The notes beneath the pieces were generated by a model, which worked only from the letters and a program-made list of their open reading frames with translations, searched no databases and was not told where the DNA came from. A DNA stretch of 64,000 bases from Podarcis filfolensis (taxonomy: Eukaryota). The stretch is from assembly GCA_964270895.1 (NCBI GenBank), contig OZ185442.1. One strand, given 5' to 3'. The position numbers were made by a program, and so were the translations under genes. Below, in pieces: positions 3,901 to 64,000 of this stretch; within the stretch, counting starts at the first letter, position 1, and the number at the start of each line of letters is the position of its first letter.

Positions 3901-5832
3901 GGCTCTGGTATCCATTCAGTCATTTATATATTTCTAAAGATTTGTCGACAGCTTAATCACCACTCTCTCAAAGCCAAATTGAGATGCCAGGCATTAAACG
4001 TGGCACACCTCAAAACCTGCAGCCTGGCTTCTATGCCCGTCCCCTCCCCAAGCCAAGCATCCCCACACCGAAATTGACACAGCCACCATCCCAGAAAGCG
4101 GGTCGTGTCCCCCCCCCCCGCTCCTGGAACAGCCCCAGGAAGGAGTCAAACAGATTGCAAGGTAGCAATGTGGAAACCAATCATTCTTGGGTGGGGCTCT
4201 TTACTCCCCCCTGATTCTTGAGCTGCAGCCAGTGGGGATATTTTACAACTTCTGAAGCTATCAAACTTTCCATGCCATCATCTCATCTCCTGGGTGGGGC
4301 AGGCAGCTGAGCTGACAGTAACTTAAGATAGGAGAGTACTTAGCTGGGGGTGGGTCTCATGAAAAAGAGGGTCCCCTGCCTGAAGGTCAAGGCTTCGATA
4401 AACAGCTGGGTGTAACTAAGAGCCTTGAAGGGCTCCTCCACTCGGAAACATGACCCGCCTCTTAAGGGAGATGCCTCTGCTCCAAGAGAGGGGTTTCTTA
4501 CCAGCGATTTCCGGGATACATATCTGGAGAGCACAATTGCTGCTATTCCGCAGGAGATTGTCTGCAAAGGGGTGACAGATGACAGGAAATAACACACTGC
4601 AAAGAGTTTTACAAGGTTACAAGCTGGGCTGTACGTGTGGGAAGCCAAATCCCCCAAATCCAAATGGTGCATTCAAGGGGCCATATGTGCGAATAAAGCA
4701 CATTTGAGAACTTTGCACCATCTATTTGCACGTGGGGGACTAAAGAAGAGGGCAAAAAACAGTGCTCCCCCAATTTTGGCTCTGGCCATTCCCACAGTAG
4801 ACCAGAAGCCCCCAGCCTCAACAGAACACAGGTTCCCTACCCTAAAAGCAAATCATTTCCTCCACCATAAGAGTATAGCATACTCTTTATATATACTCTT
4901 TATATAGCATAGCAACCATTTACTTGTATGGAACCAGAAAAGGGGTTGACTCAGCTACACCATTGGGGGCGGACTGCACTGCAAGATACTACTACTACAG
5001 ATTGCTCTCTGCCCACCATATCCCAAACTGGAGCACATTTAGTTCATTTCCTAGAACTTCAAGGGCACCCTCTCTGCCTTTGCAGAGCTGGCCCCGAGAA
5101 GCCACGTCAGTCTTCCCTCCTCCAGCAAAGACACTGCAAGGAGAGGCGTACCAAGATGGCAGAGATCACGGTCACAATGTTGGAGATGGCGTACTGCAGG
5201 GAAATGGTGTCATGCGGGTTGGCAATGTGCCGCAGCACCGTCCCATGGACCAGAGCGCTGGTGATGAAGTTTAGGTGGCCAATGACTATCAGGATGAGTC
5301 CTGTTTTCATCAAGAGCTTCTGGGCGCTGCTGGAGTCAAGGTGACCTGAAAGAGAGGAAGGCGAGGTCTTTCTTCCAGGACTGAGTCTGGCTCACAAGCC
5401 ACTCTATCACCTAGACCCAGAGCATGGAATGTTGCAAAGTAAAACAAAGACAGAGGGAAATTATTATTTATTTCATCCTTATTGCCCTACCCTTCCTCCC
5501 ACTGGGAGCACAATAAAAACAAGCTAGTTAGAAAATTTAAAAACCTCCCCCTTTCCATGCCAGGCATCGTCTCCCTCCCCATGCCAGTACTTACCCTTTC
5601 TCTAAACCAGGGGTCAGCAAACTTTTTATGCAGGGGGCCGGTCCACTGTCCCTCAGAGCTNNNNNNNNNNNNNNNNNNNNNNNNNNNNNNNNNNNNNNNN
5701 NNNNNNNNNNNNNNNNNNNNNNNNNNNNNNNNNNNNNNNNNNNNNNNNNNNNNNNNNNNNNNNNNNNNNNNNNNNNNNNNNNNNNNNNNNNNNNTTGCTA
5801 TGCACACTGCGAGGGGGGCAAGTAGTCCTCCA

Positions 5833-5864
<32 letters not shown>

Positions 5865-7785
5865 CCCAGCCACCTTCTCGGTTTGCCGCCTGCCTCATTC
5901 GCTGAAGGGCTGGCAGCGGTGGCGCGAAACGAATGGTCTTCCTCCCCACCTAGAGAAAGCATCTGGCTCCCAGGCCTTAGTTTGCCGACCCCTGCTCTAA
6001 ACCTTAGTTTAGAAAGTTCAGGTCCCAAGCATCATAATCTTCCCACATAGGGAGGGAAATTTCTTTCAGCTGCTTGATGGCTGCCTTTGTTGTCCTTTTC
6101 TGCCCTTTCCCCAATTCTACAGTATCCCTTTTGAAAGGTCCCAGAACTATATACATGGAGGACGCCAAGTGTGGCTGTGCCACAGATTTGTATAAAAGCA
6201 TCACGTGAGTTGATATAACGTGGCAGTTTTATGTTGATCCTTTCCTAAGAATCCCTAGAATGGAATTTCCCTTCCACACACCCCACCTCCAGGCTTCCAT
6301 GTGCTACAACATTTTTACCAAGTTTTCCCGAAGTGATCCCAAGAGCTTGTTCCTGCTCTGTCACTGCCCCCTTAGACCTCCAAGTAAGGTATATATATGT
6401 GAAACTGGATGTCTCTAAAGCCCACTGCTTTCTTCCTCTCCTTTCTCTGCAATGAGGGCCAGAGCAATTGATAGTTTCTCCTTGCTCTGGCAAGCAGATA
6501 ACGAGGCTTTCATTATCAACTTATTTTATTAAACCCTGTCCTTCCAAAGGAGCTCAGGGTGGCAAACACTTCAGTAATAAAAAAATACTTTTAAAAATAA
6601 ATAAAAACATTTAAATGAAGCTGAATGTTGGAAGATTCAGGACAGATAAAAGACAGCTGTTCTTCATGCAGCTCATAATTAAACCATGGAACTTGCTCCC
6701 ACAGGAGGCAGGGATGACCACAAACTTGGATGGCTTTAAAAGAAGATTAGATAAATTCATGAAGGAGAGGGGTCTCCATGGCTGTGCTCTGCCTCCACAG
6801 TCAGCAGCGTTAAGCCTCTGAATATCAGCTGCTGGAAACCACAGGAGAGGAGTGTTGCTGTGGCTCTCAGGTTCTGCTTGTGGACTTCCTATTGAGGATC
6901 TGGTCAGCTACTGTGAGATCAGGAGGCTGGACTAGATGGGCCGTTGGCCTGATCCAGCAGGCTCTTCTTATGTTCTTGTCTTTTAAGCACAAACTGCTTA
7001 AAACATCTAAAACAATACTAAAAAAAAATAAATCTAAAAATTTAAGAACAGATGTGACAAAATCATGTGGTCTGGATATGTCCTCTGAAACAGGAGTTTT
7101 CAGCAAGCATCTAGAGGAGCACAGGAATGGCACTTCCCCAATGTAAATATTTGATTTGTTAGTCACCTAAAACAAGGTAGGTCTCTAGGCAACCTACGAT
7201 CAAGTTTTAAAATTACAAAATTGCTTTAAAATGGCCATGAATTTTTTTTAACAAATCAATATATTAAACATGGAAACATCACCAACCTCCACAAGAAAAC
7301 AAAGAGGTTTGTGAGAGCTTAGCACAGTGGAAGTCAAGAGAATGAGGAAACTAACCAAGTAGAGGCTGGGTACTGCTTCCTTTTTCTTTGATGGTGTTAC
7401 AGCTTCATGCCCAGCATGAATTGTTTGCATTTCCAGTTAAATTCTAAATGCTCCATTTAAGCCGCTGAAGGTCTTTTGCTAAAGTTCAAGGTGTTTTACA
7501 AGTTGAGCCTACCAGTCAGAAGCAAGCACCGCTGAGCTTAAGGGAGTTTACTCCCAGGAAACCATACACAGCCATGTGGACTTGCTATAGAGCAGTGTTT
7601 CCAACCTTGGGCCTCCAGCTGTTTTTGGACTACAACTCCCATCAACCTTAGCTAGCAAGACCAGTGGTCAGGGATGATGGGAATTGTAGTCTGAAAACAG
7701 CTGGAGGCTCAAGGTTGGGAAACACTGCTATAGAGCATAAAATAGCTAAATCCATGGATCAGCACAGCTGCTGCCTGCACTCCTT

Positions 7786-45374: not shown

Positions 45375-53897
<8,523 letters not shown>

Positions 53898-53944
53898 CGC
53901 CGCGATCCTCCTTTGCCGCCTGACCCCGGAGAAGGCGTGCAGAG

Positions 53945-54135
53945 AGGGCCCGCCCCCTGCCGGGCCTCCCATTGGCCCGCGCTCCCGGTCCCGTCCCTGC
54001 ATGGCGTCCCTGTGGCCCAATAGACTCGGAACAGCGACGGGAGTACTTGCTGCTGATTGGGGGACTCGAGGGTTGAAAGGGGAACGCGAAGCGGCTTAGC
54101 TGCGCCTGCGCGCTCTCAGCTGAGCGGCCACGTGT
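53945..54135 (-). promoter_or_regulatory. AK2: AK2 CpG-island promoter
   Basis: GC box CCCGCCCC at about 53949-53956; CCAAT boxes near 53971, 54016 and 54055; NRF1-type TGCGCCTGCGCG at 54101-54112; E-box CACGTG near 54130. Confidence 0.75.
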
Positions 54136-60525: not shown

Positions 60526-60600
60526 CCAATCGGATTGCTGTGCTTGGTTGCCAAGGCTACCCTTATGAGCAGAGATGGAGGGGGCAGCTGCCTATATAAA
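60526..60600 (+). promoter_or_regulatory. AZIN2: Candidate AZIN2 core promoter (CCAAT and TATA)
   Basis: CCAAT at 60526-60530 and TATATAAA at 60593-60600, upstream of a GC-rich leader that ends in AAG|GTGGGT; predicted TSS about 60620-60630. Confidence 0.65.
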
Positions 60601-60624
60601 GGACCAGCATTCCTCCTGTGTCTA

Positions 60625-60752
60625 AGATTAGCTGGTGCTGCTTTGCATGGTGTAGGCTTTGGAGTGGGGGGAGGAGGAGGAGCAGCCACTGCCGAAGCCT
60701 ATATTTACTCTTGGGAGACCCATGGGCAAAATCCGTTTAAATGCTTTTTAAG
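60625..60752 (+). other. AZIN2: Candidate AZIN2 5' UTR exon 1 with uORFs MV* (60647-60655) and MGKIRLNAF* (60722-60751)
   Basis: Follows the TATA box; donor AAG|GTGGGT at 60752/60753 followed by intronic G-runs. Confidence 0.6.
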
Positions 60753-60950
60753 GTGGGTGGAGGGGTATTCTGGGTACCAAGGTGGGTGGGGAGGGGATGG
60801 AGGCTCAAGGGAGAGAAGAGGGATGGTAGTGTATCAGGGGGAGGGGGCAGGGAAGGGAACGATTTTCTTGCATGGTTGACTGAGCTGTTCTGGTAACCAG
60901 GTGGATTTCCCGCCCCACATCCTCCATATCCCCACCCCCACCCCTTACAG

Positions 60951-61069
60951 AGATCTCGGATCCCCAGCAGCAACTGCGCCTCGGGGTGTTGCAAAAGCTC
61001 AGAGTTCACCGGAGAACCCCCCTGGCATTACACCTAGCCACCCAGGAAGGAGGAAGGCTTCGGGACTTG
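60951..61069 (+). other. AZIN2: Candidate AZIN2 5' UTR exon 2 encoding the uCC C-terminus RSRIPSSNCASGCCKSSEFTGEPPWHYT*
   Basis: Acceptor CCCCACCCCTTACAG (AG at 60949-60950), donor TTG|GTGAGG at 61069/61070; EPPW codons at 61014-61025; TAG at 61035-61037. Confidence 0.72.
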
Positions 61070-61489
61070 GTGAGGCCTTGGGAGGAAAGCTTGGAGGTGG
61101 GGGGAGTGGAGGGTGGGGTGGGGTGGGGAAGGGCGCTTCGTTCACCTCCCAGGGAGAGGAGGGAGGGAGGGAGAGGGACAAACATTGCAGGCACACCTTC
61201 ACCTGAAATGGGCACCTTTCCCCCTCCCCAAACCCCAGGTCTGCACGTCACTATTATTAATCTGGGTTAAAGACACAATTCCCCTGTTTTGTTTTTCTGT
61301 TTTGTGGCAGGGGGAGGAGAAAGAGAGAGAAAGACCTTGACGTATATATGCTGTTGTTGGCAGGTTCAGGACAAATAAAAATAAAGTCCTCCTTTATGCA
61401 GCTCATATTTAAAACCATGGCATTTGCATGGCCACCAACTTGGATGACTTTGAGAGAGAACTGGGCAAATTCACGGAGAAGGCCACAAT

Positions 61490-62140
61490 TATTACTGTTG
61501 TTGTTATTATATTATATGTTATTATTAATCACCTATCCACTGTAAGGTCCTCAGAGCAGGTTACAGCGTTGAAACACAATATGAACAATTTAAAACAACT
61601 TGCAACCATAAAAATAAGGCTGTTCCTAAAATCATACACTTCAAATGTCGAAAGCCAGGGTAAAGAGGTGTGTCTTTAGCATTCTCCAAAAGCTGTATAA
61701 TGAAAGTGGCAGATGCACTTCTGTGAAGGTCTTCCACACTTTAGGGGCTGCCACTGAGAAGGCCGTTACCCCCTAAGCCTTTGAGGGTAGAGGAACAACC
61801 AGGAGGGCGTCCTCCACTGACCTCAGCACCCAAGAGGTTCTGAAGGGAAGGAGGTGGTCGTTCAGATATTTAGGGGCCTGTGTTATTTGAGACTTTAAAC
61901 ACCAACATGAGGACCTTGATGTGTGCAGAAATGACCTGGCAACCAGTGCAGCTGCTTTAAAACAGGATTATATAAGATTTAAGTGGAACCCCAGCCAGTA
62001 ATCTAGCTGGTACATTTTGGACCAATTGAAGTTTCTGAGTTGTCTTCAAGGGGCTTTGCAATAATCTAGAGTACATTGCAGTAATCTAGTCTGGAAGTTA
62101 CCAGAGCAGAAGAGTACAGTGGTCAAGTCATCTCTGTCCA
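61490..62140 (-). mobile_element. L2 LINE 3' region, decayed
   Basis: (TTA)n-like tail at about 61490-61530 and reverse-strand L2 ORF2 motifs (GGCAACCAGTGCAGCTG, TTCTGAGTTGTCTTCAAGGG, TACATTGCAGTAATCTAGTCTGGAAGTTACC). Confidence 0.75.
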
Positions 62141-62905
62141 AAAGGGGCAAAAAAGCTACAACTCCTTTTGTTAACAGCCACACATAGAAGCTTTTCCTAT
62201 GCATCCCAGATGCCAGCTATATCCCTTAATTCCAAAAAGCTCAAATCAGTGGTTCTGATTTATCGATTGCAGGGCTGTTCCATTGGCTAAGCTGAGGCAA
62301 CAGTAACTTTAGTCTCTCCATCAATGGTTTCCATTCTAGTCAGTTCAAGAAATGCTAAGTGTCTGAGTTTTCTGTTTTCCTCTTCCCTCCCAATCACTTT
62401 TCCTTTTGTGTCACATCTTTTAGATTAGAGGGCAGGGAGTGTCTTATTACTGTAAGCTGCTCTCAGAGCCTTTTTTGGCTGCAGAGCAGGGTAAAAATGG
62501 CTTGGGTCCAAAGTGCTACTCAGAATCATGCAATGTATTTCTGTTATCTAGTGGAATTCGCTTTTTTAAAATATGAAGAAGTGTTTTTGAAATGTTCCTC
62601 ATTGCTGTGTGACATGAAAAGACTGTGATTCAGCCTAAAGTTGGTTTAGAAATTATAAATTCAAGTTTAGTTGTTTATTCCCAGGTAAATGGGAACAGGA
62701 TTGTGGCCTTAGCTACTGCTTTGGTTAGGTTAATCATTTTTAAAAACTCTTTAATCAGCTAAAAAGGGGGCTCACAATCAGGCCACATATTTGAAAAACA
62801 TAAATTATATTTAATAAAAGTGTTTGTGCAAAAACCCCTGCAACCAACTAACAGTGTATTAAGAGAAACATTTCTTCCTTGCATGGAAGGAATGTCTCTT
62901 CAAAG

Positions 62906-62951
62906 ATGATGCCTGCTATGGCACATGTATGATGCCTGCTATGGCACATGT
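62906..62951. repeat. Perfect 23-bp tandem duplication ATGATGCCTGCTATGGCACATGT x2
   Basis: Direct inspection. Confidence 0.95.
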
Positions 62952-63376
62952 GTGCATCTGTGATGCTCTAATCTCTTGCCCCTGAACTCTGTGCAGTGCC
63001 CCAAAGAAGATAAAGGACAAACTCTGCAAGATCCGCTTGTCCCAACATGAGAAGAGAATGGAACAGATGCAACAGAAGTCAACAGAGGCTTGGTGAACTC
63101 CTGAAAGGCTGTGCCTTCAGCTAGGGAAAATCTCTTTCCAGACTTCCATGTTTCTAATCCTCATGGCTGGTCATTAGGAATAACTTGGGTCGTGCCCATG
63201 GAGGCAATGGAAGGCATGGCTGCTGAGCACCTTTCCTTGGCCTGAATGGGAGAGGAGGAGGAGCCTGCCTTAACTGTTCTTCTCCTTCCTTTTCCTTCGC
63301 AGTGTGTTGCATACTTAAAAACTATACCCCCTACTGACGGAGGCTTTAGAAGCAATATCCTCCTTCGACAGTAACG

Positions 63377-63475
63377 ATGACCAGGTACTTGGATGAATCG
63401 GACATCATGATGGTGGAGGAGGGCTTCACCACCAGGGACTTGCTAGAGAATCTCCTCCTGGAGGTTTCCCAGGCG
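63377..63475 (+). CDS. AZIN2: Antizyme inhibitor 2 / ODC-paralogue, first coding exon (MTRYLDESDIMMVEEGFTTRDLLENLLLEVSQA)
   Basis: Not in the ORF track; read manually. Exon 63303-63475 has a strong pyrimidine tract plus CGCAG acceptor and a GCG|GTAAG donor. Matches mammalian AZIN2 MAGYLSESDFVMVEEGFSTRDLL better than ODC1 or AZIN1; head-to-head with AK2 as in mammals. Confidence 0.92.
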
Positions 63476-64000
63476 GTAAGAGGCAGGGGCAGTTGACATA
63501 CTGGGTGGGTGAATTGTAGTCCTTTTGGTGTCTGCATCCCATTATGCTCTGTCCATACTAGAGAGTATGATGCTATCATGTACATAGGAGGGAACAGTTT
63601 TCCTGAGCCTGTCATTTGCCCCTCTTTTTTAAAAAAAGTTTTTTTAAAAATTGCACTAACATGCTTCTTAAATATTAGCGCTATTTCATGATGATTAAAA
63701 AGGAGAAGGAAAATTATAATAAAATGACATGACAGGAAAGACAGAGCACAAGTGCAGGACTCCAGGTTTTACGAGGGTTGGGAGCAAGTTTCTTGACCTT
63801 TCGGTTTGAAATATATGCTTGAAAGTCCATGTGCTGTTCCTGGCGAAGCCTTGGGAGCCACAGGAATAGTAGCTGAGCAGGATTCCCTGGGATCAGGGCA
63901 AGGATCCTGCTTCAGGGCCTTTCCTAACATTTTGCTTCTCCCCCTTTCGCTTGCAGAAGCAGAATAAATCACGCAAAATAAGAGTAGCCAGCTTTGTGCA

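Follow-up and report, generated by a model that had tools for sequence, protein, structure and literature searches.

The window analysed here, a stretch of 64,000 nucleotides of Podarcis filfolensis DNA (contig OZ185442.1, assembly GCA_964270895.1), carries the leader and the first coding exon of AZIN2, a gene of the ODC family, and, on the opposite strand, exons of the gene for adenylate kinase 2 (AK2). Specifically, the 33 codons that start at position 63377 (MTRYLDESDIMMVEEGFTTRDLLENLLLEVSQA) can be aligned in register with the N-terminus of ODC and, in a search covering 1.8 billion representative proteins, the best matches of this first coding exon (MTRYLDESDIMMVEEGF...) were N-termini of AZIN2, among them those of proteins from Varanus and birds that bear the annotation antizyme inhibitor 2. 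The first exon of AK2 lies about 6.7 kb upstream of the AZIN2 TATA box, and the gene order AK2/AZIN2/NDUFS5 is common to ostrich, pheasant and Phrynosoma, with AK2 placed head-to-head as in the lizard. A run of 134 N, either an assembly gap or a masked stretch, occupies positions 5661-5794 of the window. The features of the locus, including a candidate upstream conserved coding region (uCC) that contains a Pro-Pro-Trp (PPW) motif, are the following:

51276-51608 and 53490-54095, minus strand: exons 2 and 1 of AK2 (adenylate kinase 2), head-to-head with AZIN2.
60526-60600, plus strand: core promoter, with a CCAAT box (60526-60530) and the TATA box TATATAAA (60593-60600), read directly.
60625-60752, plus strand: AZIN2 exon 1, non-coding, with the 5′ end inferred at about 25-30 nt past the TATA box and the donor AAG/gtgggt at 60752.
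60647-60655, plus strand: two-codon uORF, AUG GUG UAG, kept in squamates and turtle and absent in ostrich.
60722-60751, plus strand: uORF1, 9 codons (MGKIRLNAF) plus UAA, overlapping the uCC start codon in a different frame.
60741-60752, plus strand: uCC codons 1-4, AUG CUU UUU AAG (MLFK), in the context guuuaaAUGc, identical in four other amniotes.
60753-60950, plus strand: intron 1, 198 nt, with GT...AG boundaries, alignable within squamates only.
60951-61037, plus strand: uCC codons 5-32 plus UAG, with PPW at 61017-61025; orthologous frames are present in Phrynosoma (L004), Thamnophis (L005), Trachemys (L006), ostrich (L001), a neognath bird (L002) and frog (L009).
61038-61069, plus strand: remainder of exon 2 3′ of the uCC stop, 32 non-coding nt, with indels between species.
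61070-63302, plus strand: intron 2, 2233 nt, read from the window sequence.
63303-63477, plus strand: exon 3, with a 74 nt leader opening with the conserved TGTGTTGCATACTT, the AZIN2 start codon at 63377, 33 codons and the donor GCG/gtaaga.

The sequence-only reading had proposed that a splice-bounded exon of 119 nt (60951-61069) contains an open frame ending at a stop codon at 61035-61037, and its coordinates, splice sites and frame could all be verified in the sequence. In the window, this exon 2 is delimited by the acceptor ...ccccttacag/AGATCT and the donor CTTG/gtgagg, and its first frame reads RSRIPSSNCASGCCKSSEFTGEPPWHYT up to the TAG at 61035-61037, the C-terminal end of the encoded peptide being ...KSSEFTGEPPWHYT-stop. 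Exon 3 begins at 63303 after the acceptor cgcag/TGTG, and the spliced distance from the uCC stop to the AZIN2 AUG amounts to 32 + 74 = 106 nt with no ATG, exactly as had been counted. In Phrynosoma, an extra ATG absent in the other species is found in the same interval (L004, ~10009).

The joins between exons 1, 2 and 3 of the lizard were deduced from consensus splice sites together with frog and bird RNA contigs. Spliced AZIN2 mRNA contigs of the frog (L009-L016) contain both the homologous exon 1-2 junction (...GTTAAG/AGAACA) and the exon 2-3 junction, and the latter is also present in the neognath RNA contig. These homologous junctions support the earlier claim that the segment is exonic in AZIN2 mRNA. 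That the frame is open merely by chance, in a segment that is not spliced or not exonic, is an explanation to which we give a practically negligible probability. In 64 kb of the same composition, read in six frames, the expected number of EPPW occurrences is 0.37 and that of PPW-x-x-x-stop is 0.4, while the full F-x-x-EPPW-x-x-[ST]-stop pattern occurred in none of 60 simulated sequences. The motif is, moreover, found again at the equivalent place in 6 other tetrapods. Expected counts below one and this recurrence make a chance origin of the PPW frame unlikely, and the exon itself is part of the frog and bird RNA contigs.

Joining position 60752 to 60951 opens the PPW frame back to an AUG at 60741-60743, immediately preceded by an in-frame TAA at 60738-60740. 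Accordingly, the lizard uCC consists of 32 codons, with MLFK encoded by exon 1 and the other 28 codons by exon 2, and it is split by the 198-nt intron. Its AUG lies in a middling context, with A at -3 and C at +4. The same TAA-AUG arrangement occurs in all 6 intact uCCs (the window, L001, L004, L005, L006 and L009), the frog start reading uaaAUG CGU GUU AAG. Since TAA directly precedes the AUG in the spliced frame, a near-cognate start further upstream is ruled out. The frame had originally been interpreted as a weakly initiated uCC of the AZIN1 type, with a non-AUG start and initiation boosted by queuing ribosomes, and this interpretation does not hold with an AUG in exon 1 directly behind a stop codon. 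The resemblance between the C-terminal motif and that of AZIN1 speaks in its favour, but the stop codon in front of the AUG is shared by every intact orthologue, and among vertebrate ODC homologues a non-AUG uCC has been assigned to AZI1 orthologues only (Ivanov, Atkins & Michael 2010, PMC2811004), so that we regard an AZIN1-type start as very improbable.

The uCC start codon is embedded in a short stretch of exon 1 that is itself well conserved. uORF1 terminates with the exon's last complete codon, its AUG has C at -3 and G at +4, and this small frame recurs with unchanged length and position in Phrynosoma, Thamnophis, Trachemys, ostrich and frog. Over the last 47 nt of exon 1 (window 60706-60752; ostrich L001 8388-8434) a single variable site is found among five amniotes (with L004, L005 and L006 as the other three). 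Further upstream, the CCAAT box, the TATATAAA box and the block between them can be aligned with Phrynosoma, Thamnophis, Trachemys and ostrich. The one mammalian locus obtained (L008) has the same CCAAT/GGTTGCC block immediately 5′ of an N run (5524-5998) that takes in the promoter and the exon 1-2 region, and the uCC comparison therefore covers squamates, a turtle, birds and a frog.

The comparison loci, namely those of Phrynosoma, Thamnophis, Trachemys, ostrich, the neognath, the frog and a pheasant (L007), were obtained by exact-protein look-up, which returned no locus for Xenopus tropicalis (P0185), bullfrog (P0189), Peromyscus (P0172) and Gavia (P0028). With the lizard as reference, the two-AUG element of exon 1 is identical in Phrynosoma and Thamnophis and differs by 1 nt in Trachemys and by 1 nt in ostrich. 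The uCC of the window, ending in KSSEFTGEPPWHYT-stop, corresponds to frames ending in ...EPPWHFT-stop in Phrynosoma, ...EPPWHYT-stop in Thamnophis, ...EPPW-stop in Trachemys, where the His codon is a stop, and ...GSSAFLGGPPWHNT-stop in ostrich. Phrynosoma, Thamnophis and ostrich share with the lizard both the AUG and the length of the uCC, and the five amniote uCCs are free of indels, which do occur in the 3′ non-coding part of exon 2. In the frog mRNA contigs, uORF1 (MGSGRVNAC) overlaps the TAA-AUG start of a 33-codon uCC that ends in ...KSSEFIAEPPWAL-stop, 75 nt 5′ of the AZIN2 AUG, and the length change with respect to amniotes is in-frame only.

Nine residues (R5, S10, G16, S20, S21, F23, P27, P28 and W29) are invariant in 7 sequences, PPW thus being present in 7/7, and the start, the frame and the SS-x-F-x-x-x-PPW core are kept from frog to lizard, turtle and ostrich. 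In other words, the PPW frame is ancient and conserved in AZIN2 leaders, and the proposal of an ancestral feature is well founded to this extent. The residues past PPW, on the other hand, vary between HYT, HFT, HNT, AL and none (0, 2 or 3 codons), and a Pro-Ser terminus was not found in any of the AZIN2 uCCs compared. Because these residues differ in number and identity, the identical F-x-x-E-P-P-W-x-x-S/T-stop spacing that had been noted with respect to AZIN1 is not a conserved property; what stands of that observation is a resembling C-terminus with PPW. In Trachemys scripta (L006, 5796-5873), CAT has been replaced by TAG right after Trp and the ancestral TAG remains two codons downstream. 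With the turtle uCC stopping directly after Trp, the post-PPW tail seems dispensable.

In the two other birds compared, the element looks altered or decayed. In the neognath RNA contig (L002, 170-703; SRR31383128) the stop codon that should follow PPW is missing: the PPW frame opens at a far upstream AUG located in a different 5′ exon, spans 177 codons and overlaps the AZIN2 start (ATGA). In the pheasant (Phasianus colchicus) the exon 1 element is degraded (L007, 4790-4850), and no uCC exon or PPW frame was detected at L007 4850-6000, between AK2 and the AZIN2 AUG, where local alignment scores equal those of shuffled queries. The uCC therefore appears, from these sequences, to have been lost in a galliform, and its decay in some birds indicates that it is dispensable in some lineages.

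As to the nature of the conserved signal, peptide-level selection on the uCC is, judging from the aligned sequences, weak overall, with a modest coding signal. Variable columns are distributed almost evenly over codon positions 1/2/3 (10/11/9); the lizard-turtle comparison gives a pN of 0.07 against a pS of 0.24, and the lizard-bird comparison a pN/pS of about 0.85. The last 11 codons give, between frog and lizard, a pN of 0.15 against a pS of 0.59 (P ~0.06), and in the frog the conserved Lys and Glu, both Ser and one Pro are encoded by other codons. Selection appears, from the substitution pattern, to be concentrated on the C-terminal SS-x-F-x-x-x-PPW, the AUG and the frame, the same distribution that has been described for uCCs generally (PMC2811004).

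A different possibility is that conservation reflects a nucleotide-level element, that is, a promoter-proximal, splicing or RNA-binding signal, in which the open frame is incidental. The nearly invariant 3′ end of exon 1 among amniotes and the lack of third-position bias over the whole uCC would fit with such a signal, as would the TGTTGCATACTT motif of exon 3, which testifies to non-coding constraint in the AZIN2 leader. However, the frog has, in spite of many nucleotide differences, retained the AUG with the TAA in front of it, the frame and KSSEF..EPPW, with different Ser, Lys, Glu and Pro codons, and neither a significant structure nor an Rfam family is associated with the region; hence, this explanation seems improbable to us. 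The 12-nt TGTTGCATACTT motif lies at the start of the AUG-bearing exon (window 63305-63316; L008 6450; L009 292; L001 9933) and is identical in lizard, Phrynosoma, snake, turtle, frog and mammal, with one base off in each of two birds. An explanation of the conservation by RNA structure was considered and discarded: the Rfam search for an RNA family in the leader gave no match, and RNA folding revealed nothing unusual, with z-scores of 0.16 (frog leader) and +1.2 (lizard exon 2).

The kind of element found in the lizard is already known. Vertebrate ODC and AZI2 orthologues have been reported to carry an AUG-initiated uCC (Ivanov, Loughran & Atkins 2008, summarised in PMC2811004), and the lizard element is a member of this described class. 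In particular, it shares with the class the leader of an ODC homologue, a frame conserved between species, adjacent prolines (in PPW) and an AUG start, while the rule that animal uCCs end in Pro-Ser does not extend to the AZIN2 uCCs, which end in HYT, HFT, HNT, AL or with a stop after W. The sequence-only reading knew of no such switch described for AZIN2 and called for a literature check; the literature shows that the element is not undescribed. The AZIN2 uCC is, nevertheless, little known: PMC2811004 states its existence, while a comprehensive AZIN review (PMC6313458) and a paper on Xenopus AZIN2 (PMC6738921) make no mention of an AZIN2 uORF. As of 2010, the AZI1 uCC was the only one tested experimentally (PMC2811004), and we found no later experimental test of an AUG-type uCC in the literature.

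In AZIN1, the PPW motif needs eIF5A and high polyamines lead to a pause at this site (Ivanov et al. 2018, via PMC9082881, PMC11550727 and PMC8705083); ribosomes queuing behind it then increase the use of the weak AUU start codon, with repression of the main ORF as the outcome (PMC9082881, PMC11550727, PMC8705083). The AZIN1 uCC peptide is printed as ...DFNAEPPWEPS (PMC9648851), in agreement with the C-terminus given in the sequence-only reading.

Taken together, the element of the lizard is a real and ancient one and, by analogy with AZIN1, it probably senses polyamines through stalling at PPW. Our preferred reading, to which we assign a probability of roughly three in four, is that it represents the AZIN2 orthologue of the ODC-family uCC in its AUG form, with 32 codons and a polyamine- and eIF5A-dependent pause at PPW that lowers AZIN2 expression. 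The open frame, the splice consensus, the AUG behind a stop codon and the conservation are properties of the sequences themselves, and the polyamine and eIF5A function is attributed by homology with the tested AZIN1 uCC. Following this reading, ribosomes translating the AZIN2 uORF would need eIF5A to form the Pro-Pro-Trp bonds, and high polyamines would interfere with eIF5A and cause a ribosome pause at 61017-61025. The paused ribosome would block those behind it or make them queue, thereby reducing AZIN2 and closing a negative feedback loop. Since the start codon is an AUG in a middling context, basal use of the uCC is expected to be higher than in AZIN1, and for the same reason control should rely less on the rescue of a weak start. 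It would probably operate more through a roadblock combined with lost re-initiation. Speculatively, uORF1, by overlapping the uCC AUG, may allow part of the ribosomes to skip the uCC start and to initiate again at AZIN2.

It might be argued that translation of the uORF represses AZIN2 constitutively, as with any AUG uORF, polyamine sensing having been lost and PPW being a relic. In line with this alternative are the AUG start, which does away with the weak-start sensor known from AZIN1, the lack of a Pro-Ser terminus, the variable tail, the decay of the element in birds and the weak selection signal. PPW and the preceding SS-x-F are, however, invariant from frog to lizard in spite of synonymous codon changes, and in AZIN1 it is PPW itself that constitutes the polyamine- and eIF5A-dependent stall site. 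On balance, we hold constitutive repression to be unlikely, though less so than a nucleotide-level element, and favour the polyamine-responsive AUG-started uCC.

The rationale for such a feedback also needs to be revised. It had been argued that feedback would be logical given that the Xenopus AZIN2/ODC2 product has been reported to be an active lysine/ornithine decarboxylase, an argument that probably fails for squamates. The catalytic Cys is retained in the AZIN2 of frog and sea turtle, in GPTCDG and GPSCDG (P0235, P0223, P0258), while 6/6 squamate AZIN2 proteins (P0155, P0156, P0179, P0187, P0191 and P0193) have Gly in place of Cys-360 (GPTGD). Cys-360 is lost also in the 2 bird proteins that could be matched over this region (GPPGHAED or GPLGHAED), and the Lys-69 motif is kept in every AZIN2 protein where it can be scored. 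With Gly at this position, lizard AZIN2 probably lacks the decarboxylase activity of its Xenopus counterpart. For an AZIN2 that binds antizyme, feedback would still be logical, as it is for AZIN1. As far as the sequences compared indicate, the uCC survives the loss of Cys-360, but it is lost or altered in some birds.

A more far-reaching and tentative proposal, which we regard as possible but clearly less probable than the preferred reading, concerns the leader as a whole. The AZIN2 leader might be a two-uORF switch distinct from that of AZIN1, with an AUG-started PPW uORF whose start is nested in a conserved 9-codon uORF. This switch would have persisted over some 350 million years, in frogs as in lizards, through the change from an active decarboxylase (frog and turtle, which keep Cys-360) to a presumably regulatory protein devoid of Cys-360 (squamates and birds), and would have been dismantled in some birds. 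If the two-uORF switch were true, polyamine sensing by roadblock and bypass, instead of start-codon rescue, could be new in detail.

The results presented here provide a correct annotation of the lizard AZIN2 leader, with three exons and three small uORFs, one of which is the PPW uCC. In addition, fresh genome and RNA data bear out what the literature offers in a single sentence, the presence of an AUG-started uCC in AZIN2 orthologues, with the small comparative additions that the post-PPW tail seems dispensable and that the uCC start is nested in a conserved 9-codon uORF. These findings leave the understanding of polyamine feedback unchanged and amount to sound but ordinary annotation.

The closest known system is the AUG-initiated uCC of ODC and AZI2 orthologues, from which the lizard element does not differ in kind: the gene family and the gene itself (AZI2), the position in the 5′ leader, the AUG start and two adjacent prolines near the C-terminus are all shared. 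The AZIN1 uCC is likewise found in the leader of an ODC paralogue and has a similar C-terminal [DE]-F-x-[AG]-E-P-P-W (...DFNAEPPWEPS in AZIN1, ...SEFTGEPPWHYT in lizard AZIN2). By analogy, the eIF5A- and polyamine-dependent pause at PPW would be expected in the lizard element too, with the same negative direction of feedback. The two differ, however, in their architecture. The AZIN1 uCC, 52 codons long, starts at AUU, contains PPW at codons 47-49 and ends in Glu-Pro-Ser, whereas the lizard AZIN2 uCC is split by an intron and has 32 codons, an AUG with a stop immediately upstream, PPW at codons 27-29 and an HYT tail; among the AZIN2 uCCs in general, 32-33 codons instead of about 50 and a tail of 0-3 variable codons lacking Pro-Ser set them apart from the AZIN1 type. 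Other polyamine-responsive uORFs include the MAGDIS uORF of AdoMetDC/AMD1, the short uORF of plant AdoMetDC, which ends in Pro-Ser, and the yeast HOL1 uORF, which ends in Pro-Ser-stop. These are also short leader ORFs, and they stall ribosomes at high polyamines via the nascent peptide or termination. They act at or beside the stop codon, whereas the conserved element of AZIN2 would block elongation internally, at PPW, and the residues adjacent to its stop codon are free to vary.
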